DNA from: Cyanophora paradoxa CCMP329
Taxonomy: Eukaryota; Plantae; Glaucophyta
Assembly (NCBI GenBank): GCA_004431415.1
Contig: QPMI01000621.1
Coordinates: forward strand, 150,034 to 214,033
DNA length: 64,000 bases
Direction: 5' to 3'
Part shown: piece after piece, positions 2,528 to 64,000 of the stretch
Layout of the letters: every line of letters starts with the position of its first letter
Position numbering within the stretch: the first letter of the stretch is position 1
Made by a program: the position numbers and the translations under genes
Notes under the pieces: generated by a model
Database searches by the model: none
What the model was told of the DNA's origin: nothing
Seen by the model: only the letters and a program-made list of their open reading frames with translations

Positions 2528-5500
2528 TCAGGGGTACGGGCGGCGCCCGGCGAGGAGCCTGTCGATGGGGTCCCGGGCCCGCTGGAGGTCCTCCGGGGAC
2601 TCGAACTCGCTCACGTTCGCGACGTTGATCCGGACCGAGACCTCGGGCCCCAGGCGCGCGAGGACCTGGGGGGAGGAAGGGTGAGGGGGGCCGAGAAGGT
2701 GTGGGGCGGGAGGGGGTACCTCGAAGGGGCGGAGGGCGGAGCGGGAGTAGGGCTCGAGGGTGACGGCGACGTAGAGGCGGCGGAGGGCGGGGAGGGCGGC
2801 GATCGCCTCCGCCTCGGCGACGGAGAGGGGCGCGCCGGCCTCCTCCTCCTCGGCGTCCAGGGGCCGCCCGAGGCGCAGGTCGAGCTCGGTGAGGGCGCGA
2901 CGTCCTCCTCGGCGCAGGAGCCCGACGACGTCCTCCGGGCTCGCCTCGCGCGCTGCCGAAGCTCAGCTGAAGCTCAGCTGAAGCTCAGCTGAGGGCCGAG
3001 CGCGCACCGTTGAGCTCGAGGCGGAGGGCGGAGAGGTTTGGGGGGCACGAGAGGGCCTCGGCGAGGGCGGGGAGGAGCGCCGCGTTGGGGCCGGCCGCGT
3101 CGCTCCCCTCCACCCGCAGGACCAGCTCCCTGGCGCGATTGAATCTTAGATAAGCTTCAAGAGTTCTCTTAGGTTCTGGGCGGGGGTGATCCTGAGAACA
3201 CGATGATCTCTTAGGTTTCCGAGTTATAATTAGATCTTGAATCTTAGATAAGACCTGGGCCTGGGCACAAGTCTTAGGTGCCTTAGGACCAGCTCCCTGG
3301 CGCGAGTCTTAGCTATAGAGAGGGTTCTGCGCTTGTCTGGGATCTCTGTAAATGTAAGATTCTAAGTTCTAGATTTGTGCAGCTGTCAGATTCGGGGTTC
3401 CACATTTCTTTCAGATTTCTCTTAGGTTCCGGGCGTAAGATTCCTCTTAGGATCTGGGGGGGTGGGGGTACCGGAGGCTGGAGGCGCCGCGGCCCAGGGC
3501 CAGCACCGCCACCGGCGCCGTCCGGTCCGCCCGGATCTGGAGAAGCCCGAGTCAGAGAGCGGGGCCGTTACCGGTATTTATAATGAAATTTAACGGAAAG
3601 TGGAGCCTCACAGCGGAGCACGAATATTAGTCAGAGAGCGGGGCCAGATCCGGAATCTGAACAGCGCAAGGCCCAATCTGAGATCTAGCGGAAAGAGACC
3701 TAAACCTTAACAACGGAAGTCCTTCTCTTAAATCTAACCGAACGCGGGGCCGGAATCTATAACTAAACAACGCAAGTCCTTCTCTTAAATCCAACGGCGG
3801 GCGCGCACGGGGAGCGGGGCGAGGCGCTCGAGGCGGGGCATCTAACGGAGAGAAAGGCCCTGGGGCCTCTGTAGCTAGAATCTTCAAGGCTTACGGAGAT
3901 CTAATAAGAAATCTAACGGAAAGAACCTCTTATATAGGTAGATCTTATATACAGGGCGCACGCTCTCTTATTATAAAATTAAGAGGGCGCGCACGCAGAG
4001 GGGCCCGAGGGACTCGAGGCGGGGCATGCGCCCGAGGGCGGCGAGGGCGGCGTCCGAGAGCTCGACGCCCGCGAAGTGGCGGAGGTGGGGCCGCAGCGCC
4101 GCCGCGTCCACCTCCGCGAGCCGCGCGAGCTCGTCCGACCTGAAGAGGGGGCGGATGAGGGCCGGCCGCGGGGCGGAGGAGGCTAGTCTGGGCGGAGGAG
4201 GCTGGCAGAGGAGGCGCGCCGGGGCGGGGCGCGAGAGAGGGGGTGGAAGAGAGGCAGAGGAGGCTGCGCTGGGCTGGGCTGGGCCTCGAGCTCGCTCGCT
4301 CACCCGAGCTCGGCCTCGTTAGTTTGGGGCTAGTCTGGAGGAGGGCCAGGGCCCGGGCGGAGGAGGCTAGTCTGGGCTGGGCTGGGCCGGGCGGGGCCTC
4401 GCTCGCTCACCCGAGCTCGGCCTCGTTAGTCTGGGGCTAGTCTGGAGGAGGGCCGGGGCCGGGGCGGAGGAGGCTAGTCTGGGCTGGCCAGGCTGGTCGG
4501 GGCGGGGCCTCGCTCACCCGAGCTCGGCCTCGTTAGTCTGGGGCTAGTCTGGAGGAGGCCTAGGGCTGGGGCCCGGGTGGAGGAGGCTAGTCTGGGCTGG
4601 GCTGGGCCGGGCGGGGCCTCGCTCGCTCACCCGAGCTCGGCCTCGTTAGTCTGGGGCTAGTCTGGAGGAGGGCCGGGGCCGGGGCGGAGGAGGCTAGTCT
4701 GGGCTGGCCAGGCTGGGCTGGGCCGGGCGGGGCCTCGCTCACCTGAGCTTGGCCTCGTTGAGGAAGAGGAGGCGGCGGAGGCTGCGGCCGGCGGGCCCGG
4801 CGGCGAGGGCCGCGACGCCCTCGGAGACCTCGCCCCGCTGGCAGCGGAAGGCGAGGGCCAGGCGCTCGAGCCGCGCCAGGGGGGCGAGCGCCGCCAGCGC
4901 CGCCGACTCGGAGCCGTCCTTGGGGCGGAGGCCGAGGCTGCGGAGCAGCGGGCAGGCGGCGGCGATGGCGGTGGCGACCTCCGGCGGCATGCCGTTGTCG
5001 AGGGCCGGGAAGCATAGGGAGAGGGAGCGAAGGCCGCCGAAGGGAGCGAGGGCGGCCCGCAGCTCGGCGGCCGGGGGCGGCAGTATGATCGAGAGGGGCG
5101 ACCGCCGCGCGTTGGCGAGGCTGAGGTGGAGCCCCTCGAGCGGGGCGGGCGCGCCCTCGGCCTCGGGCTCCGTATCCTGAGGGCGGAGCGCCCCAAGCGC
5201 TCCGAGCAGGTACGCGGACAGGAAATCGGGGCCGTACCCCTCCGCGAATCCGTGCTCGTCCATGTACTCCGGCCCGAGCACTCGGACCACCACTTCCCGC
5301 AGCAGCGGCGCCGTCGCCGGCGCCGGCGCGGCGGCCGGCGCCGCTCCGCGCGATCCGCCGGCTGCAGCGCTGCGGCTGCGGCTCCGGGCGAACGCCGCGA
5401 GGAGACGGCAGGCCGCCGCCAGCTCGCGCCAGTCCGGGCCGAGCACGACGCCGGCGCCCCCGCCGAGCCGCAGCCTCCGATCCTCCACGAGCGCCGCCGC

Positions 5501-6403: not shown

Positions 6404-6439
6404 TGTGCCCCTGGCCACTGGTCAGTGGCCAGGGGCACA
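6404..6439. repeat. Perfect 17-bp inverted repeat (hairpin, 2-nt loop)
   Basis: TGTGCCCCTGGCCACTG-gt-CAGTGGCCAGGGGCACA. Confidence 0.9.
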
Positions 6440-45146: not shown

Positions 45147-46192
45147 TTAGCTGTCGGCGGGGATGGGAGCTTCGTAGAGGGGGCCGACGCCGAGCTTCGG
45201 GAGGGGCCAGAAGCGGAGGACGGCGCGCCCGATCAAGTTCTTCTCCGGGAGGAACCCCCACACGTGCGAGTCGAAGCTGTTGTTGCGGTTGTCGCCGAAC
45301 ACCAGCAGCGAGCCTGCGCGCGCGAGGCTCGGCGAGGCGGCCGCGCGCGCCCAATCTGCGAAGCCTGGCGCGCACCCTCGGGAACGGTGATGGGCTTGAG
45401 CTCGTACTCCATGGGCTCTTTCACGTAGCTCTCGCTGACCGGCACGCCGTCGACGTACAGCCGGCCGTCGTGCACGCTCACGGTCGAGCCCGGCGTGCCG
45501 ATCACCCTGCGGGCGCGGGCGTCGGGAGGCGGAAGCGAGCGGCGGCACTCCTGCGGGGGCGCACCGCTTGATGAAGGCATCCTCGCGCTTGTAGCCGGTG
45601 TCAACAAGCGCCTGCGGCGGCTCGAAGACGACGACCTCGCCCCTGCCGCAGACGCGAAGCCCGTCAGTCGAAATTTGATGCGGCACAGATCTTTCGACGG
45701 CGCGAGCGCGGGGGCTCGCCTGTGCGGTTCCCTGAACTTCAAGCTGACCTTCTCGACGAACAGATGATCGCCGATGTCCAGACCGGGATACATGGAGAGG
45801 GAAGGGATGAAGCGCGGCTCGCAGATGAACGTGCGGATGAAGAACGCGACGGCCAACGATCCGGCGATTGTGATGAAGTCCTCGTTGGCCAGCAGGTACT
45901 GGACGAAGCTCTTCTTCTCCGGCTTGGGGTCTTCCGGCTTCTTCTCCTTCAACTCCGCGGTGGCGAATCGCCGCGGAGCCTCGCAGCGGAATGTGATCTC
46001 CAGCGGCCTCGGTCGCAGCGACGAGACATCGCCCCGCCACCTAGCTGTGATGCTGTGCGCGGGCTCAGGCCGGACAGCACGCGCTGCCCCCAGCTGCGCG
46101 CGCGTCGACGCCGGACGCTCGCAGCAATCTGGCCGCACTGTCCATTGCCGCGGGGCGGCGCCGGGAGGCTGCACGAACGACGCAGAGAACAT
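45147..46192 (-). CDS. lepB: Plastid type-I signal peptidase (thylakoidal processing peptidase/PLSP-like)
   Basis: [32 protein letters not shown] (catalytic Ser), AFIKRVIG (catalytic Lys), [19 protein letters not shown]; N-terminal transit-like [10 protein letters not shown]. Confidence 0.93.
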
Positions 46193-46311
46193 CACAGAAC
46201 TCACCCCCCCCTCCACGGGTACAGCGGTATCTAGTTGGCGCCTCCGCGAGCGCCGCTCTGAGTGGTTTGTGCCTCCTCCGCGAACAATAGAGCGCAAGGA
46301 GAGTGTCAAGT
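46193..46311. promoter_or_regulatory. Probable bidirectional promoter (119 bp) between signal peptidase and UBC9
   Basis: Head-to-head ATGs at 46192 (-) and 46312 (+); no specific motif identified. Confidence 0.55.
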
Positions 46312-47144
46312 ATGAGCGGAATCGCACGCGGCCGTCTCGGCGAGGAGCGGAAAGCCTGGCGAAAGGATCACCCGCACGTGAGTAGACGCAAGCCAGGCGC
46401 TATCTACGATCGGCATCGCCGCCGCGCGCCATCGCTTGGCCGCAGCGCCGCCAGGTGCTCATTCGCTCGGCGCAGGGCTTCTACGCGCGGCCAGAGAATG
46501 ATCCTGCGACTGGAACGGCAAATCTGATGAAGTGGGAGTGCGGCATTCCCGGCAAGCAAGGGGTGCGTCGCTCAAAGCCCGCGGCGCTATGCGCGGCCCG
46601 AGGCGTGCGCTCGCCTGCAGACGGCCTGGGCGGGAGGCGTGTTCCGGTTGACAATGGAGTTCTCTGAAGACTATCCCAGCAAGCCGCCGAAGTGTTCGCA
46701 CCGCCCGCCGCGGCATGACCGCCCGCCGACTCTTGCACGGTGCTTTGACCGCGCTCCTCCATCCCATCTGCAGGCAAGTTCGTGCCACCGCTCTTCCACC
46801 CCAACGTGTATCCGTCCGGTACTGTGTGCCTTAGCATCCTGAACGAGGACGAGGACTGGAAGCCCTCCATCACTGTGAAGCAGGCGCGCCGGATTGTGCC
46901 GCCAGGTTCCAGGCAGGCCGCTGAACCCTGCCACCGCCTCAGATTCTGCTGGGCATTCAGGAGCTGCTGGACAACCCGAACCCCAAGAGCCCCGCGCAGG
47001 CCGACGCTTACATGTGCTTGATGTGCGTCTGAGATCTCCCTGCGCGGGCCCGGGGCCAACCTGACGCTGGGGGGCAGAAACAACCCGAAAGTGTACGAGG
47101 CGCGAGTTCGGCAGGAGGTCCAGAAGAACCCGCCCCCCGCATGA
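46312..47144 (+). CDS. UBC9: SUMO-conjugating enzyme E2 (multi-exon)
   Basis: [28 protein letters not shown]...[12 protein letters not shown]...[64 protein letters not shown]. Confidence 0.97.
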
Positions 47145-47429
47145 CCCCCCTCTCGCCTCTCCTTGCACACTCCCCCGGCCCTTCCCTTCGACATTCTCAC
47201 CTTCGCATCTCTGCTGCCTTCAACTTTCGAAATGATCTTAACCAAGCCTGATCTCATATGCCCGCCTTCCGAAGTTCGCTGTAGCTTCAACGGTACACAC
47301 GCGGCCACAACGGTCACAGTAACGGTCAGCAGGCCGGCTTGCTAGTCAGCTTCCCTCGGCTAGGCCGGACTAGCTAGCTTCCCGCCATCGCGCACGCCCG
47401 AGCGCGAGCATTCCTGCACGCCGCCGTGC

Positions 47430-49350
47430 ATGAAGCAGTCAAAGCGAAAGGAACCCAGCCTCTGGGATGACGGCTTCGACGAGGCCCGACGTCGGCACCG
47501 CTGGCACGGCAAGCGACCCGACAGCAGCAGCTCGTGGGCCGGCAAGGGCAACATGAAGCGTGTCAACAAGATCACTCAGCAGGCGCGCAAGGCGAAGGAG
47601 CCCAAGCTCCCTGACCTCGACATCCTCAAGGGCGAGCACCCCGCGGCAACGGTCCGCTGCCTGGACACCAGCGGCCGCGCCTACCACGTTCGCCTTGGCG
47701 ACTTCGTCATCTGTTCAGTTAGCTCAGACACCCAGCTGTGTCCAGAACTCAGCGTCGTTCGCCCGAAGCCCTTCCATTTCCCGCGCCCAGGTGAAACGAT
47801 TTTGGCGCGAGTCGAGGGCGAGTTCCCAACACAGACGAAGGCGAAGCGCGGCGACTTCAACTACTCCGTCAACGGCGTCATCCTTCGGCGCTTCGTGCGC
47901 CCGGAGGACTCCGATGTGAAGGACTGCGGGCTCGGCAGCGTGATCATCAAGGCAGACGGGAGCAGGCAGCCGTGGCCATCGCAAACCACCTCATCTACTA
48001 CTCGAACGTGACGGTCCGCCCGCCGCGCCCGCGCCCCGTTCCAGCGTCCGATGCCCGTGCGCGCAGGTTCACGCACCCGCGAAGGTGGTGGCCGCGGACG
48101 AGTACAAAGCCCTCAACCACGCCGATCCCCACATCTACGTCTGTAAGCAAATCATGACGTTCCCGGGCGACGGCTCCTTCCAGTTCGACGTCGCCCTCGC
48201 CTTCAACGCGAGGCTCAAGCGAGTGGCGAAGAAGAAGATGGCGTGCTTCCTCCGGCCGCTGTCGAGGCCGGAGGAGCGCGTGGAGGCGATTGGCTACCTT
48301 CAGGACGCCGCCGCGAACGCCCTCAAGCGCCGGAAGACCGGGACGCAGCTTGTCAACGTCAAGATCCCGGTGGCCGGGCCGGCAATGTTGGTCTGCGGCT
48401 CTTATGACTCGTTCGAAGTTCTTTTTCCTATCCTCTAACGGTGCGCATCGCAGGAGAACATCGTGGCGCAGGTCGCGCACGTCGCCACGCCCATCGACCC
48501 GAAGACGGGCCAGCCGATCCCGGTTGACAAGCTGCCGGCGGCGAATCGCTTCGTTATCGAGCTTCCGGACCGCGAGACCGCTGCTGGTGGAAGCCGCTTC
48601 CTTTTTCCCGCTCGCTGTTCTTTTCCGACCTCTTTGCAGCTGTTCTCGGTCCCTCCGGCGTGGCGCAAGCGTCCAAGCGCGTCTGCAAGCGGGACGCGGA
48701 CGGAAGGCGATCCGGAAGCACAGCGAGATGCAGACCGTCACCGTCGAGAAGGCGTACGGCGGCTTAATCGTGCCGCGCCACACGGGCTCCCATGACGTCG
48801 TCCAGTTCGACGAGCGTGCGCCCGGCCCGCCCTCGCCGCGCCGCTCGCTTACGAAGCTCTGCTCCTTGGGCGCGGCAGGTCCCGGTCGGATCGTGGCCAC
48901 GAAGCGCTCGGCAGGAAAGGTGGGCACGTCACGCTCGAGCTTCCGAGCTACGAGTACGGCCCCGACGGCGAGCGCATCGCCAGCCTCGCGGGGCCCCTCG
49001 CGGCTGTCCCCGTGAAGCGCCCGCGCCGGTGCCGCGCCGGCGCCAACACCGTCGCCAAGGCGCCGCCTGTCCCCGAAGCAGCCCTTCAGAACCTGCCGCC
49101 GCCGCCCTGCCGGCCCCGCCGCCGCCGCCCTGCCGGCCCCCGCCGTCGCCGCCCCGCCGGCCCCGCCGCCGCCGCCCTGCCGGCCGCCGCCGCCGCCGCC
49201 CGCCCGCCCCCGCCCGCCGGTCGCCGCCCTGTCGGCCCCTGCTGCTGCTGCCCCACCGGCCGCTGCCGCCCTACCTGCCCCCGCCGCATCCGCCTCGGTC
49301 CCCAAGTGCGCCCCTCCCCCTCGCCCCCGCTCGGCTACTTGCTCGCCTAA
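47430..49350 (+). CDS. BAH-domain-like protein carried by the transposon (multi-exon, 1-bp indels), copy 1
   Basis: YHVRLGDFVIC...ILARVEG...VILRRFVRPEDSD...LIYYSN...VVAADEY...YVCKQ follows the BAH motif order (Y.VGD.V / IARI / RWFYRPEE / V...EY / F.C); Ala/Pro-rich tail. Confidence 0.65.
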
Positions 49351-49463
49351 TCCTGCAGCAGGAAGGATCGCGCGGCACAGCTCGCGGCCGCGGTGGCGGC
49401 GCGCAAGAGGGCAAAGTCGTGAAGCTGCTACTGAGAATCGCACTATCTAGGTTACAAGGTGCG

Positions 49464-52400
49464 CTATGTCTGGTCCAAATCCATTTCGTCTATTTCCCCC
49501 TCCGCTAGATCGTCTGCTAGAACCTCTGCTAGGGCCCTATCATCGAAATCGAGCATGTTGGCGCCCTCATCCTCCGCCTCCATCTCCTCCTCCGCCTCCT
49601 CCTCTGCCTCGGCGTCGTACTCGGCGGTCTCCTCCTCCTCCTCCTCCTCGTCCCCGCTCTCCTCGGGCACCTCGTCCTCCGGCACCGGATCCCCCTCCTG
49701 CAGCTCAATATCCTCGTCGATCTCCTCCTCGTCCGCAGGCAGGGGCACCGCTGCCACCTCCTCGCCCCCGGCGGCGCCGCCGCCGCCCTTCGCCCTGCAT
49801 AGCCGCTGACCGGTGGGGACGGGCCGCAGGTCGGGGATGAAGGGCCCATCTGGCCAGGCCTTGGCGGCGACGGGCGCGTCGTACTCGGCGTGGGCAGCGT
49901 CCTTCCGCCGGCGCTCGCCTCCGTCATGTTCCGCATCCACAGCGCCAGGCGCCGCCGCTGGTGCGTCATGATCTGCTTGAGCATGTCGAGGTCCTTGTTC
50001 CACCCGCCACCGAGAGACGTGACGGTGTGTCGCAGGCGCCGAAGGAGGCCCATGTAGGACTCGATGACCTCGCAGCTCCAACGGCCGGGCGCGTTCGTGT
50101 TGTCGACGCGCGCCCAGAACGCGAGGTGCGCAAGCGTCGAGTGCATGTAGCGTGTGAAGATCTTCCATAACGGGAAGTGTGTCTCCATCAGGCCCTGGAG
50201 CTCGGCGACGGCCTCGATAACTTGCTGCCGCGCCTCCTCGTCGGGCTTCATGTTCCGCTCGTACTGGTAGATGATCTGGCGGAGCTGCCAAATCTCGTGC
50301 ATGCCCTCGTCTTCTCGCTCCAGCTCTCCTTACTGTCGCCGAAGCAGATGCTGAAGAGGGTGTCGGGCGCCTCGGGGTCCTCCAGGATCTTCTTGGCGGT
50401 GTTGGCGGAGATCTTCTGGAAGAACTTGTAGGTGGCCCGTTCTCGGTCTTCTCGAACTTGATGTTCCGCGCGTATTTATCGCGAAGATGACGCTGCAGGT
50501 CTTCGATGCGCTTCTGCTGGTCCTCGGAGGCACCACAGGCGAGGGCGAGGAAGAAGTAGACGAAGAACCCGGCCACCCAGCTCTTGATGCCGTGCAGGGC
50601 GTCGTCGAGCCGGACCTGAGGTGCGCGTTGGCGTCCGCTGAGGCGAGGTGTCGCGGGCTTCTCACCTCGACGGCAGCGACGGGCAGCATGCTGTTCGGGA
50701 GCGGCTGCAGGAGGGCGTTGGCGTCGTGCTCGGGGTGCGGATTCTCTGTTCGCTGGCTGGAGGGAGGCCGTCCCGATCCCGCGGCCCTGCTGCGCGCACG
50801 ACTTCGACCGCCGAGCAATCGGACCTGCAGTAACGTGAGCCCATGCCGAATCTCAGCGCGTGTGACTCGGCGAACTGACCCGCGTCGGTGGACAGAATCG
50901 CAGTGCGGGCACAGGTCGAAGCCGAGGAGGACGCGGAGGAACTTGTAGTCGCCCGTCACCAAGAATTCGACCTCGACGGGCTTGTCGTGCTCGTACCCGG
51001 GGATCAGGGTGAGCGGGTTCTCGTTCAGGTACTCGACCATGTCGGCGAGGGGCTTGATGCGTGGGCGCAGGTTCTCCTCGCTGTCGCTACCGCCGAAGAG
51101 CATTAGGGGCAGGAGGGCGTAGCAGCTCTGAACGCCCTTCAGCGGGTGGTACGCCTGCGTCCCGTCCTCCTCGATGACGTAGTAGCCGTCGACGATTGCC
51201 ACGATGCAGGTCATGCCGTCGGTCGTGGAGACGCTCTTCCCGCGGAACGCGATCGTCCCGTCGCCGCCAGGCGGACTCGAGGTCTGATCTTCTTCCCCCT
51301 GTGCTTGTGCAGCGGGACGAAAGCGCTGATGAGGGCCGACAGGGCGGGCGTCGGCGTGACAGCTCTGCGGGGCGGCGGCGCTGCCGCCTCTCCGCCCGCC
51401 GCCGGCGCTGCCGCCTCTCCGCCCGCCGCCGGCGCTGCGCTCGACGGAGGCACAAAGAGCTCGAGCATGACGCCCGGCTTGCCCTTGTTCTCCTCGTCGC
51501 CGACGCCCGCCGCTGTTTCGACGATCTGCACGATCTGCACCGCTCGGTGAGCCTCGTCCCTCACCCCCGCCCCGCGCGCGCGCGCCGCGCCTTCTCGAGG
51601 TCATCGTTGACCTTGCCCCGTAGCTTCGTGATGCAGTGCTTCGACGGGAGGAAGGCTCGCAGCCCCACGAAGTGCTTCTTCAGGGCCTTCTTGAGGAGCT
51701 TCGTGAACTCAAAGTACGTCGCCTGCCCGGGTCGGTTTAGAACGGGATGGGGGTTAAAACATTCGAGAAAGGGCGCACGTCCGAGATGCAGTGGCGGTCC
51801 TTCCACTCTAGAATCTCGCAGTCGGGAAGGTGTCCCGCAGCTTCCTGCAGGCGATGCTCATCGCCTTCTTCACTTGCAGCTGACCCGATTTGCTCGTTTC
51901 CAGGGCTCGTTGGGCCTGCGGACGGTGGTTCAGAAAGGTGCTCTTCTCCAACGATTTTGTAGCCTATTAAAGTACGATTCTCGGTAGCTCTTTTTATGTA
52001 TAATAACGCGCACTGCGTGTGGCCCGATGATGCTCACGAGGCGGCGTGCCTCCGCCTCCAGCGCCTCCCTCCTCTTCTGATAGGCGCCCTCCTCCTCTCC
52101 TTTGTTCCTGGGGCGCCCTGGATAAGCATGCATATGCCTGCGCGCGCGCCGCCCCGCCTTGTACCTCGCGAAGTTCTTTTTAAACATGGGGAGGCGGATC
52201 TGGATGTCCGGACTCGCAGCGTTTAGAATCGTCGAGAGCAGCATGCGGAGGAACCGCGTGCGCCGCTGCCTGGACGTATCCGAGCATCCCTTCCCAGGGA
52301 CCTGCCTAGCTATGCGCGAGATGGTCGCTGCACGCTGTGCCGAAGTCCGCGGGACCTTGGCGCGCTTCGACTGGTGCTCCTCCCTAAGCTTCTTGTTCTC

Positions 52401-52952
52401 CGCCTCAAGCACTGCGATGCGCTCGTCGCGCGCTTTGAGCGTCGCCTTGCGGACGATCCGCTCCTCAGGCGGCACATCTTCCTTGCCGCGAGCGCGTTTC
52501 GGGGCGGTGCCGGGGCCGGGGCCGGCCGCGGCGCCGGGCTCGGCGCCTCATTAAGAACTGCATTCGTCTGCTCGCGGCCGGGCAGAGAGCATACACTCGT
52601 AAGCGCGGGCAAGTCAAGTCATGACATCGAATTTGAATGAGCGGCATACCACGTCGGCGCCGAACGCGCGACGACCGCGCTGCTGCTGCTGCTCTGGGCT
52701 AATCTGAGGCGATTGCGGGCTCGCTGGAGCCGATGGCGACCCGGGTGGCGAAGCTGGAGGGCTCTGCAGGATGCACTGGAGGAACACAGCCACTGCGGTG
52801 GCCTCTTGAAGCGCCGCCGTGCAAGCTAAGCTATGCGGATACAATGGAGACGCAATGCCGCGCGCCTCCAGTTCCAGGTGGGCGTTTCGGCTGTGGGTGA
52901 GCACTGCGATGATCCGCATAAGCGCCTGGTACGCGACCGACGCGTCCGCCAT
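49464..52952 (-). CDS. RAG1/Transib-like DDE transposase with acidic C-terminal tail (multi-exon, 1-bp indels), copy 1
   Basis: Motifs in RAG1 order: GRPR; GGDG; PLMLFGGSDSEENL; FLVTGDYKFLRVLLG..CPHC; DALHG; FTRYMHSTLAHL; GRWSCEVIESYMGLLRR. Confidence 0.88.
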
Positions 52953-53433
52953 CTCTAAAACGACTGCTGCGGGCGCTGGAAACGTTTGGGGCGCGGCTGG
53001 GCCGCGGACGGGGCGCGATGGGTCGCTGCATCGCGCGGGCGGGTTCAAAACTCGGAAAAAAAGATCGCGTGTACCTCCCCTGCCATCTGCGGAAGCGGCA
53101 GCTCCGAGCGCCGCGAGCAAGCATACACATCCGCGACAGTTAGGCGCCGAAGAGCAGCAGGCGAGCCCAGCATGCGCGATAATGCGCAATTGCGATGCAT
53201 AGCTACCTTAGGCGAAGCGGCTGGTCCACCCGCGCGGTCCTTGCCGGCCGCGATGCTCGCTCGTCGATATGGGTATGACGCGCTAAGCAAGGGGAGCATG
53301 CCCAGACTGGGTACGCAAACTGCTGAACGTCCAACTCCAGCTGAACGCCCTGCAGCTGGTGGGCCTGAAGCAGCCTCAAGCGTTAGCTATGTCGCATCGA
53401 CAGTGTAGCTATGTTAGCTGTGGAGCGAAGCAT

Positions 53434-54627
53434 ATGCCCGCTGACTACGTGTCCGAGGAGGAGGACCAGGAGGAGACCATCAACGCGCCGTGCAATCGCC
53501 CAATGACTTCGTCTGTCATCGAGATCAACAGCAGCGACTCGGAGAGCGATGGACCAGCGGCAGCGCGCCGAGCGCAGGGCGCGCATGAAGGCGGACGAGG
53601 AGCGCGCGCTCGAGGAGGAGGATGAGATCAGGCGGCGCCACCAGGCAGCTTTGGAGGTCAACCTCGCAATAGAGCGCGACTCGGTGAGGCCATACAAGCT
53701 GGCCGAGCTCAAGCAGTTGCTGGAGTACGCGCGCGCGTGGATGCGCGAGCACGAGCAGCTGTACGAGCAGTTCGAGGTCGCGCTGGCGCACAACAACTCC
53801 TCGAGGCCATTAACCTGCGGTCGGAGATCCGCAAGCACCGCAGCACGGCGCGCTTCTGCGGGCAGGACCCCCTCGGGCTCTACGAGGAGGCGGCCTTCAA
53901 GCCTCTCTATGACAACGTGACGGCCTTGCAGCGGCGGGCGGGGCAGATGGAGCATTTCGGCGACAATCTCTTCAAGTGCGCGGAGCACTTCCAGCGGGTG
54001 CGCATCCGGCAGCAGCAGGCGGCGGCGGCGGCGGCGGCGGAGGCGGCGGAGGCGGCGGCGGAGGCGGACGGGCTGCTGCTGCTGCTCGGTGCAAGCGCCG
54101 CCGCCTGCGTCGCGGCGACGGCGTGCTCGTCTCGCGGCCGGACGATGCCGACGACGAAGCGTAGCGCCGTTAGCCGCCCCCGCCCCGCCGTTAGCCGCCC
54201 CGCCCCGCCGGCCCCGCCCCCGCCCCGCCGGCCCCGCCCCGCCCCGCCGGCCCCGCCCCGCCCGCCCCGCCCGCCCCCGCCCCGCCCGCCCCGCCCGCCC
54301 CCGCCCCGCCCCCGCCCCGCCCCGCCCCGCCCGCCCCGCCCCGCCGCCCCGCCCCGCCCCGCCCGCCCGCCCGCCCCGCCCCGCCCCGCCGGCCCCGCCC
54401 CGCCCCGCCGGCCCCGCCCCGCCCGCCGGTCGCCGCCCTGCCGGCGACGGCGTCCTCGTCTCGCGGCCGGACGATGTCTGCAGCTAGAGTCACCAGCTGC
54501 AGTCTGCACCTGGCTTGAATACGACAGATTTACTAGTTATTCTGCTATCGTGCGCGCACCGTGGCACCGTGGCACCGTGGCACTCAGTGACTACCGAGAG
54601 TGGCGGCGGGCTGGCGGGGCGGGCTGA
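53434..54627 (+). CDS. Helical/coiled-coil cargo protein of the transposon (apparent frameshifts; 3' end uncertain)
   Basis: Overlapping codon-biased ORFs MPADYVSEEED.. / RMKADEERALEEEDEIRRRHQAALE.. / LEAINLRSEIRKHR..FKCAEHFQRVR. Confidence 0.5.
54170..54430. repeat. (CCCCG)n-type GC microsatellite
   Basis: About 260 bp composed almost entirely of CCCCG/CCCG units. Confidence 0.9.
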
Positions 54628-55931
54628 CAGGGCGGGGCGCCTGGCGGGACAGTCGGGGCCTCCGGGACACTCTGGCAGTCCGGGGCCTCGGGAGCCTATT
54701 TTCGCGCCATACAAGGCCTCCCCGACCCTGCAGCTGCATAGGAGGCCTTATATAGTGCTTTAAAAAGGTTCTCTAAGCTTTTTTCGATGTCTCCCAGCTC
54801 CTGGGGCGATGGGCCCAATTTGGAAGGGCCAAAAGTCAGCAGAAGACTAGCTGTAACGTAGTGTATAGGCGTATGATGAGTCATATGGTATGACGGGTTA
54901 AATGGGCCATCGCGGGGGCTTTGTGCAGGGCACTAAATAACGCCGTGTGACGCCTCTACATCTTGAATAAAAAGTTCTAATCAAGATACGAGGCTGCCGT
55001 GCTTCAATCGCAAGCCTCGGAGTGCAGATTCCCTGGCAGATCAAAAATTGCGAACGCGATACCGGGGTCGCCGCGCGCTCGCAGCCTTGCGAAACCTTGA
55101 GAGCGGATAAGATTGCCGCCGACAGCGAGCCCAGCTCCCCGCTCGCAGTGCAGCCGCGCGCTTAAGGCGCCGGCCAGCCACTTGGCCCGGCTGCAGCTGC
55201 TCCGGCACGGGCGGCCTCAGCCAGCCGGCACCATGCTATCGCAGCTTCAGCCATGAGCCTCGGAGAGGCGGAAGTCTCCGAGGCTCGGTCCGCGATCCAG
55301 GGCAGGCGTGCGTATGTTCCAAGTTCGCGGGCGAGGGCGTGCGCCTCGCCGAATCGTTGTCGCGGCGTGCGCCTCGCCAGGTGTACTACAGTGCCACAGT
55401 GCCACGTTGTCGAAAGCGCGAGCCGCTCAGTCAGCCGAGTTTCCTCCGCTGGCCAACCGGTACGCATACGCCCGGCCCGGCCGGCATGCCACGAGAGCGC
55501 CCGCGGCGCTTCACGCGGTCTTCCTTCATCTCCGTGACCCGCTTCTGCGAGACGAGGTCGGTGGGGGCAGCGGCTGCTTGCCGCAGTGCATGGATTGCCA
55601 GCCCCAGGTGCGAGGCCTTGACTCATCCCGAGCTTCCCGAGCAGATTACCAGGCGCGCCGGCGTAGCTCAGCGCCGATTGGGTCTGGCACGGTCCGCCTT
55701 TGCGGCCGACCCGGTTCCGTGCCCAAGCCGTTCCGACCTTCCCGAGCAGATTACCAGGCGCGCCGGGCGCACCTAGCTCAGCGTCGCCGAGCTTATAGGC
55801 TAGGCTTGCTCGGAGGCTCCGGATGCACGCACAGTTAGCCAACCAGCCGCGCCCGCGTCCCCGCCGGCTGTCGTGTGGGCGACGCATGCGCAAAAGGAAC
55901 ACAAATTTTTCTCATCCGATGAGAGCTCTAG

Positions 55932-57709
55932 CTATGCAGGACGAAGCGAGCGGCCGGGGCTAGCGCCCGATGGCGGGCGCCTCGAAAGGCGACGTCTCCG
56001 GCGGCACAGCAGCGTGTAGCTGCTGGACCGCGGCGACCCACCCTGCGACCCTAGGCCCCGGGGTTCCCGCATGAGCACGTCCCTCATGTAGAGATACTCG
56101 ATAACGGCCTCCAGCTCCTCCACCTCCTTTATGTACATGCGCTCCTCCTTCCGCCACACCTTCGCCTCACGCTCCAACTCCAAGTCCCAATTCCTCTTCA
56201 TCCTTGAGACCTGCGCCGCGCCGCGTTACGCGCCAGCGGGCGCACGCACGCGTGTGGGCAATCGCGGACCTTGTTTCCAAGTCATCCACCTTCGTCTGCA
56301 GCGCAGCGTTCTGGTTCTGCAGCTCCTCGCACTCCTCTTCGAGGTTTTTGACCCGAGTCGCTCTCTGCGGGCGCCGGAGGGACCGCCGTCAGCAGCGCAT
56401 TGCGGGCGCCGCGGCGCGGGCGGCGCGGCGGCCGGCGGGCTCACCAGACTGGCGTTGAGCTGCATCATCTCCTTCTCCAGCTGAGCGATCTTCTCCTCCC
56501 GTTGAGCGATCTGCCGCTGCTTCTCCCTGTTGGCCCACCGCAGATCAGGGAGCTCCCGCTCCAGGGAGCTGCACTTCTGTTGGAGCTCCTCACGCTGCGC
56601 CGGTGCACGGAGGAACACGTCGACTTTCGCCTTCAGTTGATTGGCGAGCTCCGCGCCAGTTAGACCCTTGTCTAGGACATCCTGCGGCCCGAATCAGCGA
56701 GGCAAGCTGCGGGCGAAGCGCACGGCGGCGTGAAACGGCGCGCGCACACGCTGCTGAAGGTACTCGATCGCTTCAAGGAGCTTGGACGCCATGCGAACCG
56801 CATCGGAAACCCGCTTGCAGCCGGTGAGCCTCCGATAGAGTGCGGCGTCCTCCTCCTCGATGCGAAAGCGGTGCCGCCCGGGCTTGTCCCAGGGGGTGAA
56901 TCGATCTTCCTCCTCGCCCGTCATCTCGACATCGCACTTGCGCCGCTTGCACTGCTGCTTGGTGACGTGGCGGGCTTCTTCGGGCTGGCTTCTTCGCGGC
57001 TGAGCTGGCAGGCGACGGCGCGACAGAGGATCGTCCATATACCGCTCCATGGCAACGAAGGGATCCTCATATTGCTCGCTCGGTGCCGCCGCGGGCGAAG
57101 GCTGGGAGGTCGCCGCCGCTGCCCGCTTGCGACTCACGCGCTTAGGCATGTCCACGGGGTCGCTGGCGAGGCCGCTGCCGCCGGCGGCTGCGTGCGTGGA
57201 GGCGTGGCCGGCTGATCATGCGAAGGCTGCGATTGCGAGGGCGCAGCTACTACCCGCTTGCGACGCGGGCGATCAGGCGTGTACACGGGGGTCGCTGATG
57301 AGGCAGCTGCGACAGGCGGCGTACACGGCTGTACAGGCGTACCCCCCCCCAAAGGCGTCCCTGGCGTCTCACAGCAGCCGCTGCCGGGGCTCTGCTCGAG
57401 CTCTGAGCGTACTGGCGAGACTTGTGGGGAGTCGCTCCCGCCCGCCGGCTCCGCCGCGGGAGGCGCCAGCGCGACCGCGGCCGTCGCATGCGCAGCTGGC
57501 GCTGCATGCGCAGGCTGAACGACTTGCTCGCTCAAAGCTGCGTCGCCAAAGTCGTCTGGATTCACGTCCTCGCCGAGGTCGTCCTGGCTGCCGCAGGTGC
57601 TGCCGCCAATCTGGCCGTGCCGCGGCCTGCCATCGCTGGCGCCGCCCAGCCACGCTCTAATGGAACCGAACGCTGAGCCGACCTTGGCAGACAGCACAGA
57701 GAGCGGCAT
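55932..57709 (-). CDS. Coiled-coil cargo protein of the transposon (multi-exon; probable frameshift)
   Basis: Disordered N-terminus, then heptad-rich REELQQKCSSLERELPDL..IAQLEKEMMQLN..WDLELEREAKVWRKEERMYIKEVEELEAVIEYL. Confidence 0.55.
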
Positions 57710-58270
57710 CTCGATCGCCGAACGCTAAGCTATAAGCGCTTTTGCTTTTCCCGCGCAAGTCCGTGGCTGGCCGCAATCTAGCTGCAGCTGGCCGTGGCTT
57801 GGAAGGGGGGGGAGATGGCTTGGGGGGGATATAGAATTTGGTCTAGCCAGCTCGAACTCGAACTCAGCCGGCTGATAGCCGCCGTGACACGGCCGTGTTC
57901 AAAATTCAAATTCCATCCATTGTTAAAGCTCGCGAACTAGCGGGATGTCCAAAAGGTCGCGCCGTTTTCGGCCCGTCGAGGTCCGTCCGGGGCCGTCTGC
58001 GACATGCGAAACAGCTCCTTACGTTTCAAACTGAACGGAGTTTGCGTCACGCCCCGCCCATTGTTAACTTCTTCCGCCAATGAAATTAGCCCAGCGCAAA
58101 CTTGAGCTCGAACTTGGCCTCGTACACAGTGGCGTACACACGCGGCCACAACGGTCACAGTAACGGTCAGCAGGCCGGCTTGCTAGTCAGCTTCCCTCGG
58201 CTAGGCCGGACTAGCTAGCTTCCCGCCATCGCGCACGCCCGAGCGCGAGCATTCCTGCACGCCGCCGTGC

Positions 58271-60193
58271 ATGAAGCAGTCAAAGCGAAAGGAACCCAGC
58301 CTCTGGGATGACGGCTTCGACGAGGCCCGACGTCGGCACCGCTGGCACGGCAAGCGACCCGACAGCAGCAGCTCGTGGGCCGGCAAGGGCAACATGAAGC
58401 GTGTCAACAAGATCACTCAGCAGGCGCGCAAGGCGAAGGAGCCCAAGCTCCCTGACCTCGACATCCTCAAGGGCGAGCACCCCGCGGCAACGGTCCGCTG
58501 CCTGGACACCAGCGGCCGCGCCTACCACGTTCGCCTTGGCGACTTCGTCATCTGTTCAGTTAGCTCAGACACCCAGCTGTGTCCAGAACTCAGCGTCGTT
58601 CGCCCGAAGCCCTTCCATTTCCCGCGCCCAGGTGAAACGATTTTGGCGCGAGTCGAGGGCGAGTTCCCAACACAGACGAAGGCGAAGCGCGGCGACTTCA
58701 ACTACTCCGTCAACGGCGTCATCCTTCGGCGCTTCGTGCGCCCGGAGGACTCCGATGTGAAGGACTGCGGGCTCGGCAGCGTGATCATCAAGGCAGACGG
58801 GGAGCAGGCAGCCGTGGCCATCGCAAACCACCTCATCTACTACTCGAACGTGACGGTCCGCCCGCCGCGCCCGCGCCCCGTTCCAGCGTCCGATGCCCGT
58901 GCGCGCAGGTTCACGCACCCGCGAAGGTGGTGGCCGCGGACGAGTACAAAGCCCTCAACCACGCCGATCCCACATCTACGTCTGTAAGCAAATCATGACG
59001 TTCCGGGCGACGGCTCCTTCCAGTTCGACGTCGCCCTCGCCTTCAACGCGAGGCTCAAGCGAGTGGCGAAGAAGAAGATGGCGTGCTTCCTCCGGCCGCT
59101 GTCGAGGCCGGAGGAGCGCGTGGAGGCGATTGGCTACCTTCAGGACGCCGCCGCGAACGCCCTCAAGCGCCGGAAGACCGGGACGCAGCTTGTCAACGTC
59201 AAGATCCCGGTGGCCGGGCCGGCAATGTTGGTCTGCGGCTCTTATGACTCGTTCGAAGTTCTTTTTCCTATCCTCTAACGGTGCGCATCGCAGGAGAACA
59301 TCGTGGCGCAGGTCGCGCACGTCGCCACGCCCATCGACCCGAAGACGGGCCAGCCGATCCCGGTTGACAAGCTGCCGGCGGCGAATCGCTTCGTTATCGA
59401 GCTTCCGGACCGCGAGACCGCTGCTGGTGGAAGCCGCTTCCTTTTTCCCGCTCGCTGTTCTTTTTCCGACCTCTTTGCAGCTGTTCTCGGTCCCTCCGGC
59501 GTGGCGCAAGCGTCCAAGCGCGTCTGCAAGCGGGACGCGGACGGGAAGGCGATCCGGAAGCACAGCGAGATGCAGACCGTCACCGTCGAGAAGGCGTACG
59601 GCGGCTTAATCGTGCCGCGCCACACGGGCTCCCATGACGTCGTCCAGTTCGACGAGCGTGCGCCCGGCCCGCCCTCGCCGCGCCGCTCGCTTACGAAGCT
59701 CTGCTCCTTGGGCGCGGCAGGTCCCGGTCGATCGTGGCCACGAAGCGCTCGGGCAGGAAAGGTGGGCACGTCACGCTCGAGCTTCCGAGCTACGAGTACG
59801 GCCCCGACGGCGAGCGCATCGCCAGCCTCGCGGGGCCCTCGCGGCTGTCCCCGTGAAGCGCCCGCGCCGGTGCCGCGCCGGCGCCAACACCGTCGCCAAG
59901 GCGCCGCCTGTCCCCGAAGCAGCCCCTTCAGAACCTGCCGCCGCCGCCCTGCCGGCCCCGCCGCCGCCGCCCTGCCGGCCCCCGCCGTCGCCGCCCCGCC
60001 GGCCCCCGCCGCCGCCGCCCTGCCGGCCGCCGCCGCCGCCGCCCGCCGCCCCGCCCCGCCGGTCGCCGCCCTGTCGGCCCCTGCTGCTGCTGCCCCACCG
60101 GCCGCTGCCGCCCTACCTGCCCCCGCCGCATCCGCCTCGGTCCCCAAGTGCGCCCCCTCCCCTCGCCCCCCGCTCGGCTACTTGCTCGCCTAA
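58271..60193 (+). CDS. BAH-domain-like protein, copy 2
   Basis: Duplicate of 47430-49350. Confidence 0.65.
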
Positions 60194-60305
60194 TCCTGCA
60201 GCAGGAAGGATCGCGCGGCACAGCTCGCGCCGCGGTGGCGGCGCGCAAGAGGGCAAAGTCGTGAAGCTGCTACTGAGAATCGCACTATCTAGGTTACAAG
60301 GTGCG

Positions 60306-63300
60306 CTATGTCTGGTCCAAATCCATTTCGTCTATTTCCCCTCCGCTAGATCGTCTGCTAGAACCTCTGCTAGGGCCCTATCATCGAAATCGAGCATGTT
60401 GGCGCCCTCATCCTCCGCCTCCATCTCCTCCTCCGCCTCCTCCTCTGCCTCGGCGTCGTACTCGGCGGTCTCCTCCTCCTCCTCCTCCTCGTCCCCGCTC
60501 TCCTCGGGCACCTCGTCCTCCGGCACCGGATCCCCCTCCTGCAGCTCAATATCCTCGTCGATCTCCTCCTCGTCCGCAGGCAGGGGCACCGCTGCCACCT
60601 CCTCGCCCCCGGCGGCGCCGCCGCCGCCCCTTCGCCCTGCATAGCCGCTGACCGGTGGGACGGGCCGCAGGTCGGGGGATGAAGGGCCATCTGGCCAGGC
60701 CTTGGCGGCGACGGGCGCGTCGTACTCGCGTGGGCAGCGTCCTTCCCGCCGGCGCTCGCCTCCGTCATGTTCCGCATCCACAGCGCCAGGCGCCGCCGCT
60801 GGTGCGTCATGATCTGCTTGAGCATGTCGAGGTCCTTGTTCCACCCGCCACCGAGAGACGTGACGGTGTGTCGCAGGCGCCGAAGGAGGCCCATGTAGGA
60901 CTCGATGACCTCGCAGCTCCAACGGCCGGGCGCGTTCGTGTTGTCGACGCGCGCCCAGAACGCGAGGTGCGCAAGCGTCGAGTGCATGTAGCGTGTGAAG
61001 ATCTTCCATAACGGGAAGTGTGTCTCCATCAGGCCCTGGAGCTCGGCGACGGCCTCGATAACTTGCTGCCGCGCCTCCTCGTCGGGCTTCATGTTCCGCT
61101 CGTACTGGTAGATGATCTGGCGGAGCTGCCAAATCTCGTGCATGCCCCTCGTCTTCTCGCTCCAGCTCTCCTTACTGTCGCCGAAGCAGATGCTGAAGAG
61201 GGTGTCGGGCGCCTCGGGGTCCTCCAGGATCTTCTTGGCGGTGTTGGCGGAGATCTTCTGGAAGAACTTGTAGGTGGCCCCGTTCTCGGTCTTCTCGAAC
61301 TTGATGTTCCGCGCGTATTTATCGCGAAGATGACGCTGCAGGTCTTCGATGCGCTTCTGCTGGTCCTCGGAGGCACCACAGGCGAGGGCGAGGAAGAAGT
61401 AGACGAAGAACCCGGCCACCCAGCTCTTGATGCCGTGCAGGGCGTCGTCGAGCCGGACCTGAGGTGCGCGTTGGCGTCCGCTGAGGCGAGGTGTCGCGGG
61501 CTTCTCACCTCGACGGCAGCGACGGGCAGCATGCTGTTCGGGAGCGGCTGCAGGAGGGCGTTGGCGTCGTGCTCGGGGGTGCGGATTCTCTGTTCGCTGG
61601 CTGGAGGGAGGCCGTCCCGATCCCGCGGCCCTGCTGCGCGCACGACTTCGACCGCCGAGCAATCGGACCTGCAGTAACGTGAGCCCCATGCCGAATCTCA
61701 GCGCGTGTGACTCGGCGAACTGACCCGCGTCGGTGGACAGAATCGCAGTGCGGGCACAGGTCGAAGCCGAGGAGGACGCGGAGGAACTTGTAGTCGCCCG
61801 TCACCAAGATTCGACCTCGACGGGCTTGTCGTGCTCGTACCCGGGGATCAGGGTGAGCGGGTTCTCGTTCAGGTACTCGACCATGTCGGCGAGGGGCTTG
61901 ATGCGTGGGCGCAGGTTCTCCTCGCTGTCGCTACCGCCGAAGAGCATTAGGGGCAGGAGGGCGTAGCAGCTCTGAACGCCCTTCAGCGGGTGGTACGCCT
62001 GCGTCCCGTCCTCCTCGATGACGTAGTAGCCGTCGACGATTGCCACGATGCAGGTCATGCCGTCGGTCGTGGAGACGCTCTTCCCGCGGAACGCGATCGT
62101 CCCGTCGCCGCCAGGCGGACTCGAGGTCTGATCTTCTTCCCCTGTGCTTGTGCAGCGGGACGAAAGCGCTGATGAGGGCCGACAGGGCGGGCGTCGGCGT
62201 GACAGCTCTGCGGGGCGGCGGCGCTGCCGCCTCTCCGCCCGCCGCCGGCGCTGCCGCCTCTCCGCCCGCCGCCGGCGCTGCGCTCGACGGAGGCACAAAG
62301 AGCTCGAGCATGACGCCCGGCTTGCCCTTGTTCTCCTCGTCGCCGACGCCCGCCGCTGTTTCGACGATCTGCACGATCTGCACCGCTCGGTGAGCCTCGT
62401 CCCTCACCCCCGCCCCGCGCGCGCGCGCCGCGCCTTCTCGAGGTCATCGTTGACCTTGCCCGTAGCTTCGTGATGCAGTGCTTCGACGGGAGGAAGGCTC
62501 GCAGCCCCACGAAGTGCTTCTTCAGGGCCTTCTTGAGGAGCTTCGTGAACTCAAAGTACGTCGCCTGCCCCGGGTCGGTTTAGAACGGGATGGGGGGTTA
62601 AAACATTCGAGAAAGGGCGCACGTCCGAGATGCAGTGGCGGTCCTTCCACTCTAGAATCTCGCAGTCGGGGAAGGTGTCCGCAGCTTCCTGCAGGCGATG
62701 CTCATCGCCTTCTTCACTTGCAGCTGACCCGATTTGCTCGTTTCCAGGGCTCGTTGGGCCTGCGGACGGTGGTTCAGAAAGGTGCTCTTCTCCAACGATT
62801 TTGTAGCCTATTAAAGTACGATTCTCGGTAGCTCTTTTTATGTATAATAACGCGCACTGCGTGTGGCCCGATGATGCTCACGAGGCGGCGTGCCTCCGCC
62901 TCCAGCGCTCCCTCCTCTTCTGATAGGCGCCCTCCTCCTCTCCTTTGTTCCTGGGGCGCCCTGGATAAGCATGCATATGCCTGCGCGCGCGCCGCCCCGC
63001 CTTGTACCTCGCGAAGTTCTTTTTAAACATGGGGAGGCGGATCTGGATGTCCGGACTCGCAGCGTTAGAATCGTCGAGAGCAGCATGCGGAGAACCGCGT
63101 GCGCCGCTGCCTGGACGTATCCGAGCATCCCTTCCCAGGACCTGCCTAGCTATGCGCGAGATGGTCGCTGCACGCTGTGCCGAAGTCCGCGGGACCTTGG
63201 CGCGCTTCGACTGGTGCTCCTCCCTAAGCTTCTTGTTCTCCGCCTCAAGCACTGCGATGCGCTCGTCGCGCGCTTTGAGCGTCGCCTTGCGGACGATCCG

Positions 63301-63792
63301 CTCCTCAGGCGGCACATCTTCCTTGCCGCGAGCGCGTTTCGGGGCGGTGCCGGGGCCGGGGGCCGGCCGCGGCGCCGGGCTCGGCGCCTCATTAAGAACT
63401 GCATTCGTCTGCTCGCGGCCGGGCAGAGAGCATACACTCGTAAGCGCGGGCAAGTCAAGTCATGACATCGAATTTGAATGAGCGGCATACCACGTCGGCG
63501 CCGAACGCGCGACGACCGCGCTGCTGCTGCTGCTCTGGGCTAATCTGAGGCGATTGCGGGCTCGCTGGAGCCGATGGCGACCCGGGTGGCGAAGCTGGAG
63601 GGCTCTGCAGGATGCACTGGAGGAACACAGCCACTGCGGTGGCCTCTTGAAGCGCCGCCGTGCAAGCTAAGCTATGCGGATACAATGGAGACGCAATGCC
63701 GCGCGCCTCCAGTTCCAGTGGGCGTTTCGGCTGTGGGTGAGCACTGCGATGATCCGCATAAGCGCCTGGTACGCGACCGACGCGTCCGCCAT
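60306..63792 (-). CDS. RAG1/Transib-like DDE transposase, copy 2
   Basis: Duplicate of 49464-52952; ORF 60370-61689 reads through DALH...YMHSTLAH...SCEVIES in one frame. Confidence 0.88.
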
Positions 63793-64000
63793 CTCTAAAA
63801 CGACTGCTGCGGGCGCTGGAAACGTTTGGGGCGCGGGCTGGGCCGCGGGACGGGGCGCGATGGGTCGCTGCATCGCGCGGCGGGTTCAAAACTCGGAAAA
63901 AAAGATCGCGTGTACCTCCCCTGCCATCTGCGGAAGCGGCAGCTCCGAGCGCCGCGAGCAAGCATACACATCCGCGACAGTTAGGCGCCGAAGAGCAGCA

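Follow-up and report, generated by a model that had tools for sequence, protein, structure and literature searches.

The 64-kb window analysed here, the whole stretch of DNA that was examined, comes from Cyanophora paradoxa, and the host is thus an archaeplastid, as a first-pass annotation of the same DNA had supposed. Two copies of a repeated unit lie in the window (47293-53159 on the plus strand and 58134-64000); they are 99.3% alike and differ almost only by one-base homopolymer indels. The unit holds about four probable genes, in agreement with the multi-gene copy proposed in that annotation, and no complete copy with both flanks falls inside the 64 kb. Its features are as follows.

47293-58021: copy 1 of the unit, 10.7 kb, without the first 112 bp of the left end
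58022-64000: copy 2, starting at the probable left end and cut off by the window edge
47430-49422, plus strand: partner gene, convergent (tail-to-tail) with the transposase gene, spliced and transcribed; in copy 2 it begins at 58271
49464-52952, minus strand: transposase gene of copy 1, about 950 aa, with predicted exons at 52952-52650, 52567-52164, 52106-52014 and 51915 or 51844-51779 (5' part), and 51722-about 51600, 51534-50880, 50824-50666 and 50615-49464 (3' part)
50880-51534, minus strand: exon of the pre-RNase H and RNase H parts, with the LAGDG Asp codon (51262-60), PLMLFGGSDSEENL, the TGDYKFL Asp codon (50950-48) and CPHC (50911-50900, first Cys codon 50911-09)
49464-50615, minus strand: last exon, with DALHG (50603-50589), the helical Zn-binding domain, His codons at 50143-41 and 50128-26, the Glu codon (50062-60) and an acidic tail
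63792-60306, minus strand: transposase gene of copy 2
53433-54170, plus strand: third probable gene, no family match
56040-57151, minus strand: fourth probable gene, coiled coil, no family match above cut-off

The partner gene appears BAH-like by eye only, and neither its exons, searched one by one, nor the partial model P0009 matched anything in Pfam or the PDB. The element also contains a 270-bp repeat of G and C only (54175-54440), related to a partner-gene repeat at 49095-49260. To its left are two host genes with GC-AG introns, judged by eye to encode a plastid-targeted signal peptidase-like protein (45147-46193, minus strand) and a SUMO-conjugating enzyme-like protein (46311-47144, plus strand). 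Elsewhere, the window carries a tandem repeat of about 107 bp in four to five copies (4235-4759) and a perfect 17-bp inverted repeat with a 2-nt loop (6404-6439).

Catalytic residues and reading frame

The first-pass annotation had assigned eight key residues to the transposase; a codon check found all of them present, with RAG1-like spacing. In the numbering of the public gene model P0004 they are D418, D522, C535, C538, H606, H757, H762 and E784, separated by 104/13/3/68/151/5/22 residues; in mouse RAG1, for which the D600...E962 numbering was taken from the same annotation, the spacing is 108/19/3/65/142/5/20. None of 20,000 shuffles of the core reproduced the ordered motif and spacing, a sanity check only, the pattern having been written after the protein was seen. 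P0004, of 944 aa, has the same structure as that predicted for copy 1; it and the other matching public models are those of Cyanophora paradoxa in EukProt (EP00741).

In the window, the frame breaks before the first Asp, where one base is missing after 51265 in copy 1 and after 62109 in copy 2. RNA contigs and the public models P0001, P0004, P0005 and P0006 restore this base, and the first motif then reads RPRVRLAGDG. LAGDG replaces the GGDG read by the first-pass annotation, which had explained the break by one extra G or an unseen intron: the one-base insertion held, the intron was rejected, and the break is an assembly deletion. Several one-base deletions of this kind interrupt the copy 1 frame. 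At each of the indels listed, Illumina contigs of two DNA runs restore a base whose depth equals or closely approaches the element contigs' own, and for most of them the short form of the window is absent from every Illumina contig. The frame breaks are therefore long-read assembly errors and not decay. The genome assembly is a PacBio one (PMC6704402), and one-base homopolymer indels such as those between the two copies are a signature of PacBio assembly. With the corrected bases, the minus strand is stop-free over 313 codons (through CPHC) and 499 codons (from DALHG to the stop), and the core requires only two short predicted GT..AG introns (50879-50825 and 50665-50616). GC3 in the two long sense exons is 0.91-0.93, like that of host coding DNA.

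At 61662 (50818 in copy 1), all four Illumina runs have C, and both window copies and P0004 have A. The change, Asp to Glu, lies immediately beyond the CxxC intron. The Illumina base is also that of P0005, and the A is a minor variant or else a shared assembly error.

Relation to RAG1

Window exons were searched one by one, and whole-protein searches and folds used the public gene models. Firstly, sequence searches with the exon carrying the paired His and the Glu gave RAG1 as the only Pfam match (E 0.068) and mouse RAG1 932-974 as the best PDB match (E 0.16), with H937, H942 and E962 all aligned; TRYMHSTLAH is identical to mouse TNYFHKTLAH at 7 of 10 positions. Longer transposase queries gave zero matches in both databases, so that the profile comparison proposed in the first-pass annotation singled out RAG1 for this exon and stayed blank beyond it. 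Secondly, the ten best named neighbours in the ESM Atlas all belong to the family or clan of the best match, RAG1 (0.94). For the core, the named neighbours were RAG1-clan and DUF1280 clusters (0.92-0.94), and for the last exon three unnamed animal clusters (0.96-0.97) stood above RAG1 (0.94). Thirdly, we compared AlphaFold models with known structures. The first was a single-sequence model with a mean pLDDT of 45 and an unfolded RNase H part, in which only the helical Zn-binding domain is comparable. Its top five matches among 48,161 chains were BbRAG1L and RAG1 (Z 10.3-8.8 over about 148 residues, rmsd about 4; mouse RAG1 range 791-951), HzTransib reached Z 7.4, and a repeat comparison gave Z up to 11.5, values near Z 10 being ambiguous for helical domains. 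When the Zn-binding domain was modelled by itself, BbRAG1L came only at rank 27 (Z 7.2) and this ranking was not reproduced; an Atlas search with that second model found nothing, and Foldseek with both models returned no match under E 0.001. The AlphaFold comparison, which the annotation had likewise suggested, ranked RAG1-type chains first with the helical domain of the first model and not with the second. To our knowledge, RAG1, BbRAG1L and HzTransib are the only CMCT members with solved structures, so a best structural match to RAG1 is expected of any member of this clade.

No relative outside Cyanophora was found by phmmer with one exon against 1.84 billion representatives or by word-indexed searches; metagenome, viral and prokaryote contigs and plasmids gave none either, and a DNA-pattern search for the left end of the element had no match outside Cyanophora. 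The homology tests are individually weak, none of those on sequence being significant, yet they are concordant: the language-model neighbours and the weak structural match point to a RAG1 fold.

Element ends and copy number

Two further features concern the ends of the element.

58019-58052, plus strand: probable left terminus, CGTTTCAAAC at 58022, preceded by TTA, a candidate 3-bp target site
47238-47295, plus strand: candidate displaced right end, TTA, 52 bp ending in ACG, then GTA, adjoining copy 1 on its left

The left end is probably at 58022, where the element begins with CGT after a 3-bp site. A high-depth contig begins at 58023 in both DNA runs, an RNA contig departs from the window sequence just before 58020, and another copy has GTA in place of TTA, the two left flanks sharing only TA. 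The depth in the left-end bin exceeds what the listed contigs explain, and a slight chance is left that the element ends further left than 58022. CACAGTG (58124) and CACACGC (58137) were tried as CAC-heptamer ends and rejected, being internal to the high-depth contig 58023-58163 and having no inverted partner; CACCGTG repeats at 54557, tried as RSS-like ends, are also internal and fit the X-C-X'-G-X scar pattern described below.

No inverted match to the left end was found on the right of copy 1, and the window showed no right end, pair of terminal inverted repeats or matched target duplication. If the 52 bp at 47241-47292 were the true right end, the full length would be 10,893 bp, and copy 1 may, from its layout, be a circularly permuted unit produced by self-integration at element position 112. 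Before the first TTA (47238) stands a C that follows GAT, which is what the scar pattern would produce.

In DNA run X5, contig depth was 966-1141 over the transposase and 1758-1945 over the left part, and about 45 for unrelated contigs, giving roughly 20-40 near-identical element copies, contig depth being a rough measure of copy number only. At least six distinct public gene models lie on different contigs, and the collapsed Illumina contigs are nearly free of variation and keep the frame open, with every catalytic residue in place. Loose ends in the RNA lead from the transposase region to 53661 and to 57250, so the element comprises the entire 10.84-kb period. The two types of joint in the RNA contigs (63487 to the 53661 type and 62908 to the 57250 type) suggest internally deleted element copies; the 63487-53661 joint, seen in two studies, removes the transposase start codon.

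Placement within the CMCT clade

We conclude, with a probability of about 85%, that the element is a young cut-and-paste DNA transposon of Cyanophora paradoxa, that it measures about 10.9 kb and carries about four genes, and that its lineage is an orphan one within the CMCT (CACTA-Mirage-Chapaev-Transib-RAG1) clade. The clade is defined by DDE, two Cys (C(2)C), H(3-4)H between the second D and E, and a third His; its termini are mostly CA..TG and its target duplications 2-5 bp (PMC12730594). The same DDE, C(2)C, H(3-4)H and third His occur in the Cyanophora transposase, which is very probably a RAG1-fold DDE enzyme of this clade. It shares DDE, two Cys and three His with EnSpm/CACTA, Mirage, Chapaev, Plavaka, ESTA and Lanisha, and 2-5 bp duplications and extra passenger genes also occur among CMCT members, of which ESTA is likewise RAG1-like by HHpred (PMC12730594). 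In contrast, most of them have CA..TG ends, and the Cyanophora protein has no detectable sequence similarity to any. The element is best seen as an orphan variant within this known clade, probably active in recent times.

The best of the alternatives, though an unlikely one, is a genuine Transib or RAGL affiliation: the element would branch close to RAG1, and its partner gene would take the place of RAG2. The resemblance lies in the TLAH motif compared above, in the higher structural scores of RAG1 and BbRAG1L (PDB 4wwx, 6b40) than of HzTransib (PDB 6pqn), in the order and spacing of D, D, CxxC, H, HxxxxH and E, in the weak superposition of the helical Zn-binding domain, in an acidic C-terminal tail as in vertebrate RAG1, and in a tail-to-tail gene pair as in RAGL and ProtoRAG, a likeness of layout only. 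The His-to-His distance (151) is not shortened, unlike that of Transib subgroup II (PMC9435367). With Transib (subgroups I and II, PMC9435367) the element shares a core without RAG2 and the same catalytic and Zn-binding residues. Measured against the features that define the RAGL and Transib families (bioRxiv 2023.08.20.553239; PMC9435367), however, the element, as far as it lies in the window, showed neither a RAG2-like gene nor a CCGHC tail nor a CAC terminus. The partner gene is not RAG2-like, and neither it nor the other two element genes matched kelch or PHD; CCGHC is absent from the acidic tail of the transposase. The left end is probably CGT, where Transib has CAC, and CACAGTG lies about 100 bp inside a contig of element depth. 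The candidate duplication is of 3 bp and not of 5 bp as in RAG1/ProtoRAG and Transib, a RING is lacking, identity to RAG1 and BbRAG1L is at most 20% over the aligned part, and the element differs from Transib in its four or so genes, its introns and its lack of CTT1. GRPR, the RAG1 nonamer-binding motif, is present only in a 57-nt intron that RNA shows to be removed. Against a close branch to RAG1 also stand the unnamed animal clusters that outrank it in the Atlas and the blank outcome both of the word-indexed search and of the one across 1.84 billion representatives. The proposal of the first-pass annotation, a RAG1/Transib-family cut-and-paste transposase, accordingly survives as a RAG1-fold DDE enzyme with its Zn-binding set and is not supported as a specific Transib or RAGL assignment.

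An alga is not new ground for such enzymes. Publications already describe RAGL in the alga Aureococcus and Transib-like proteins in plants, fungi and bacteria (PMC9435367), and the taxonomic surprise that had been claimed is thereby largely gone. Like the Cyanophora element, AanRAGL of Aureococcus anophagefferens is a multi-copy RAG1-like transposase of a unicellular alga; it differs in its RAG2L gene, its co-oriented single-exon genes, its CACAC ends and its 5-bp duplications (PMC9435367). A glaucophyte RAG1-like element was not found in the literature searched, and the text part of the supplements of PMC9435367 makes no mention of Cyanophora.

Transcription of the transposase region

Expression was read from contigs of two probable RNA runs from different studies, and such contigs drop rare RNAs. 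The partner gene is spliced on the plus strand in both runs, with at least four introns, and a loose end (about 60300 to 60671) links its 3' end to a further transcript.

60671-62949, plus strand: spliced transcript running antisense across the transposase (coordinates in copy 2; about 49830-52106 in copy 1)

All 11 of the core joints listed are plus-strand GT..AG introns of 49-192 nt and were rejected, by their strand, as transposase introns. Several of these antisense introns remove transposase coding sequence, and one removes the His motif. The antisense exon chain, its exons joined only to count stops, has no convincing open reading frame; a coding role was rejected, the longest stop-free run (301 codons) being a shadow of the sense frame. 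The depth per bin equals the exon fraction of the antisense contig within about 2% in six of the seven bins, in both runs. A single antisense contig thus explains the bin depth and leaves no room for sense or unspliced core RNA at contig level, and no sense RNA of the catalytic core was seen at that level in the two studies. Sense splicing was seen once, in an RNA contig that removes the 57-nt intron at 62950-63006 (about 52163-52107 in copy 1) and appears to come from a copy without the start codon. For the spliced product described by the first-pass annotation, this confirms one sense intron in the 5' part and leaves the core introns as predictions, the listed core joints being antisense. 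The 62950-63006 intron is in frame, is retained in the public model P0006 and ends in the GRPR codons, about 190 residues before the first Asp.

In the Cyanophora paradoxa genome, 3' UTRs often overlap (PMC6704402), and the organism has small RNAs in abundance along with four homologues of RdRP (PMC3700990); silencing is therefore plausible. A further reading, about as unlikely as a Transib or RAGL affiliation, sees in the copies relics that have lost activity, or else a gene cluster that was domesticated and silenced; the transposase would have ceased to be expressed, and the only working parts of the locus would be the partner gene and its long antisense tail. It would account for the missing sense-spliced core RNA and for the lone sense intron on a contig apparently from a start-codon-less copy, and overlapping 3' UTRs would suit it; the nearly invariant Illumina contigs, with their open frame and complete catalytic residues, and the spread of copies over many contigs speak against it, as does the loss of rare transcripts from contigs. 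A chance likeness to RAG1, arising in the GC-rich shadow frame of some plus-strand gene, is largely refuted: the dominant RNA is indeed plus-strand and spliced, bidirectional open reading frames have been reported in this genome (PMC6704402) and every individual homology score is weak, but the plus-strand exon chain lacks a long coherent frame, the minus frame is stop-free over its 313 and 499 codons at a host-like GC3, three kinds of search indicate RAG1, and the His motif lies inside an antisense intron.

A possible route of transposition

For the preferred reading, a young transposon of an orphan CMCT lineage, the route can be sketched by analogy with RAG1 and Transib. The enzyme would nick one strand at each element end, the host flank would then be closed into a hairpin, and the freed 3' ends would be inserted into new DNA, with probable C...G ends and a 3-bp duplication on insertion. 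In ordinary cultures, the transposase would be kept off by read-through from the partner gene, through collision or double-stranded RNA, and its sense mRNA would be rare or conditional.

The window contains 40 occurrences of the pattern X-C-X'-G-X, against 5.6 in shuffles, with no tie to this enzyme seen, and 420 of X-X'-X, against 62 in shuffles, which are denser in host DNA than in the element. The first pattern would arise if the first nick fell one base inside a C...G-ended element and both flanks then formed hairpins, opened and annealed over the 3-bp site; the left end of the element is compatible with this scar model. A bolder version of our reading, which we regard as a speculative one with the odds clearly against it, though slightly better placed than a Transib or RAGL affiliation, makes the element a new CMCT superfamily with RAG-type chemistry, a shifted first cut, a scar-writing enzyme, an antisense brake and a copy 1 permuted by self-integration. 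Under it, the enzyme would nick one base inside the C...G ends, leaving flank hairpins and 3-bp duplications; the element and its non-autonomous derivatives would write the X-C-X'-G-X scars common in the genome; and the element's own brake would be the partner gene, with a spliced 3' extension antisense to the whole catalytic core.

Significance

The first-pass annotation had expected this element to extend the lineage behind V(D)J recombination. That expectation is not supported: algal RAGL and non-animal Transib are already published, neither a RAG2-like gene nor a CAC end was found in the element, and it gives no direct indication of how V(D)J recombination arose. Because of those earlier publications, the element alone leaves the account of V(D)J origins unchanged. 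What it adds is an apparently intact, recently amplified glaucophyte RAG1-fold transposase without a detectable sequence relative; solved structures in its clade are limited to RAG1, ProtoRAG and one Transib. The element also supplies a clear example of antisense coverage encoded by a transposon and a candidate enzyme for the many palindromic scars of the Cyanophora paradoxa genome, and it can serve as a test case for whether hairpin chemistry reaches elements with non-CAC ends and 3-bp duplications.
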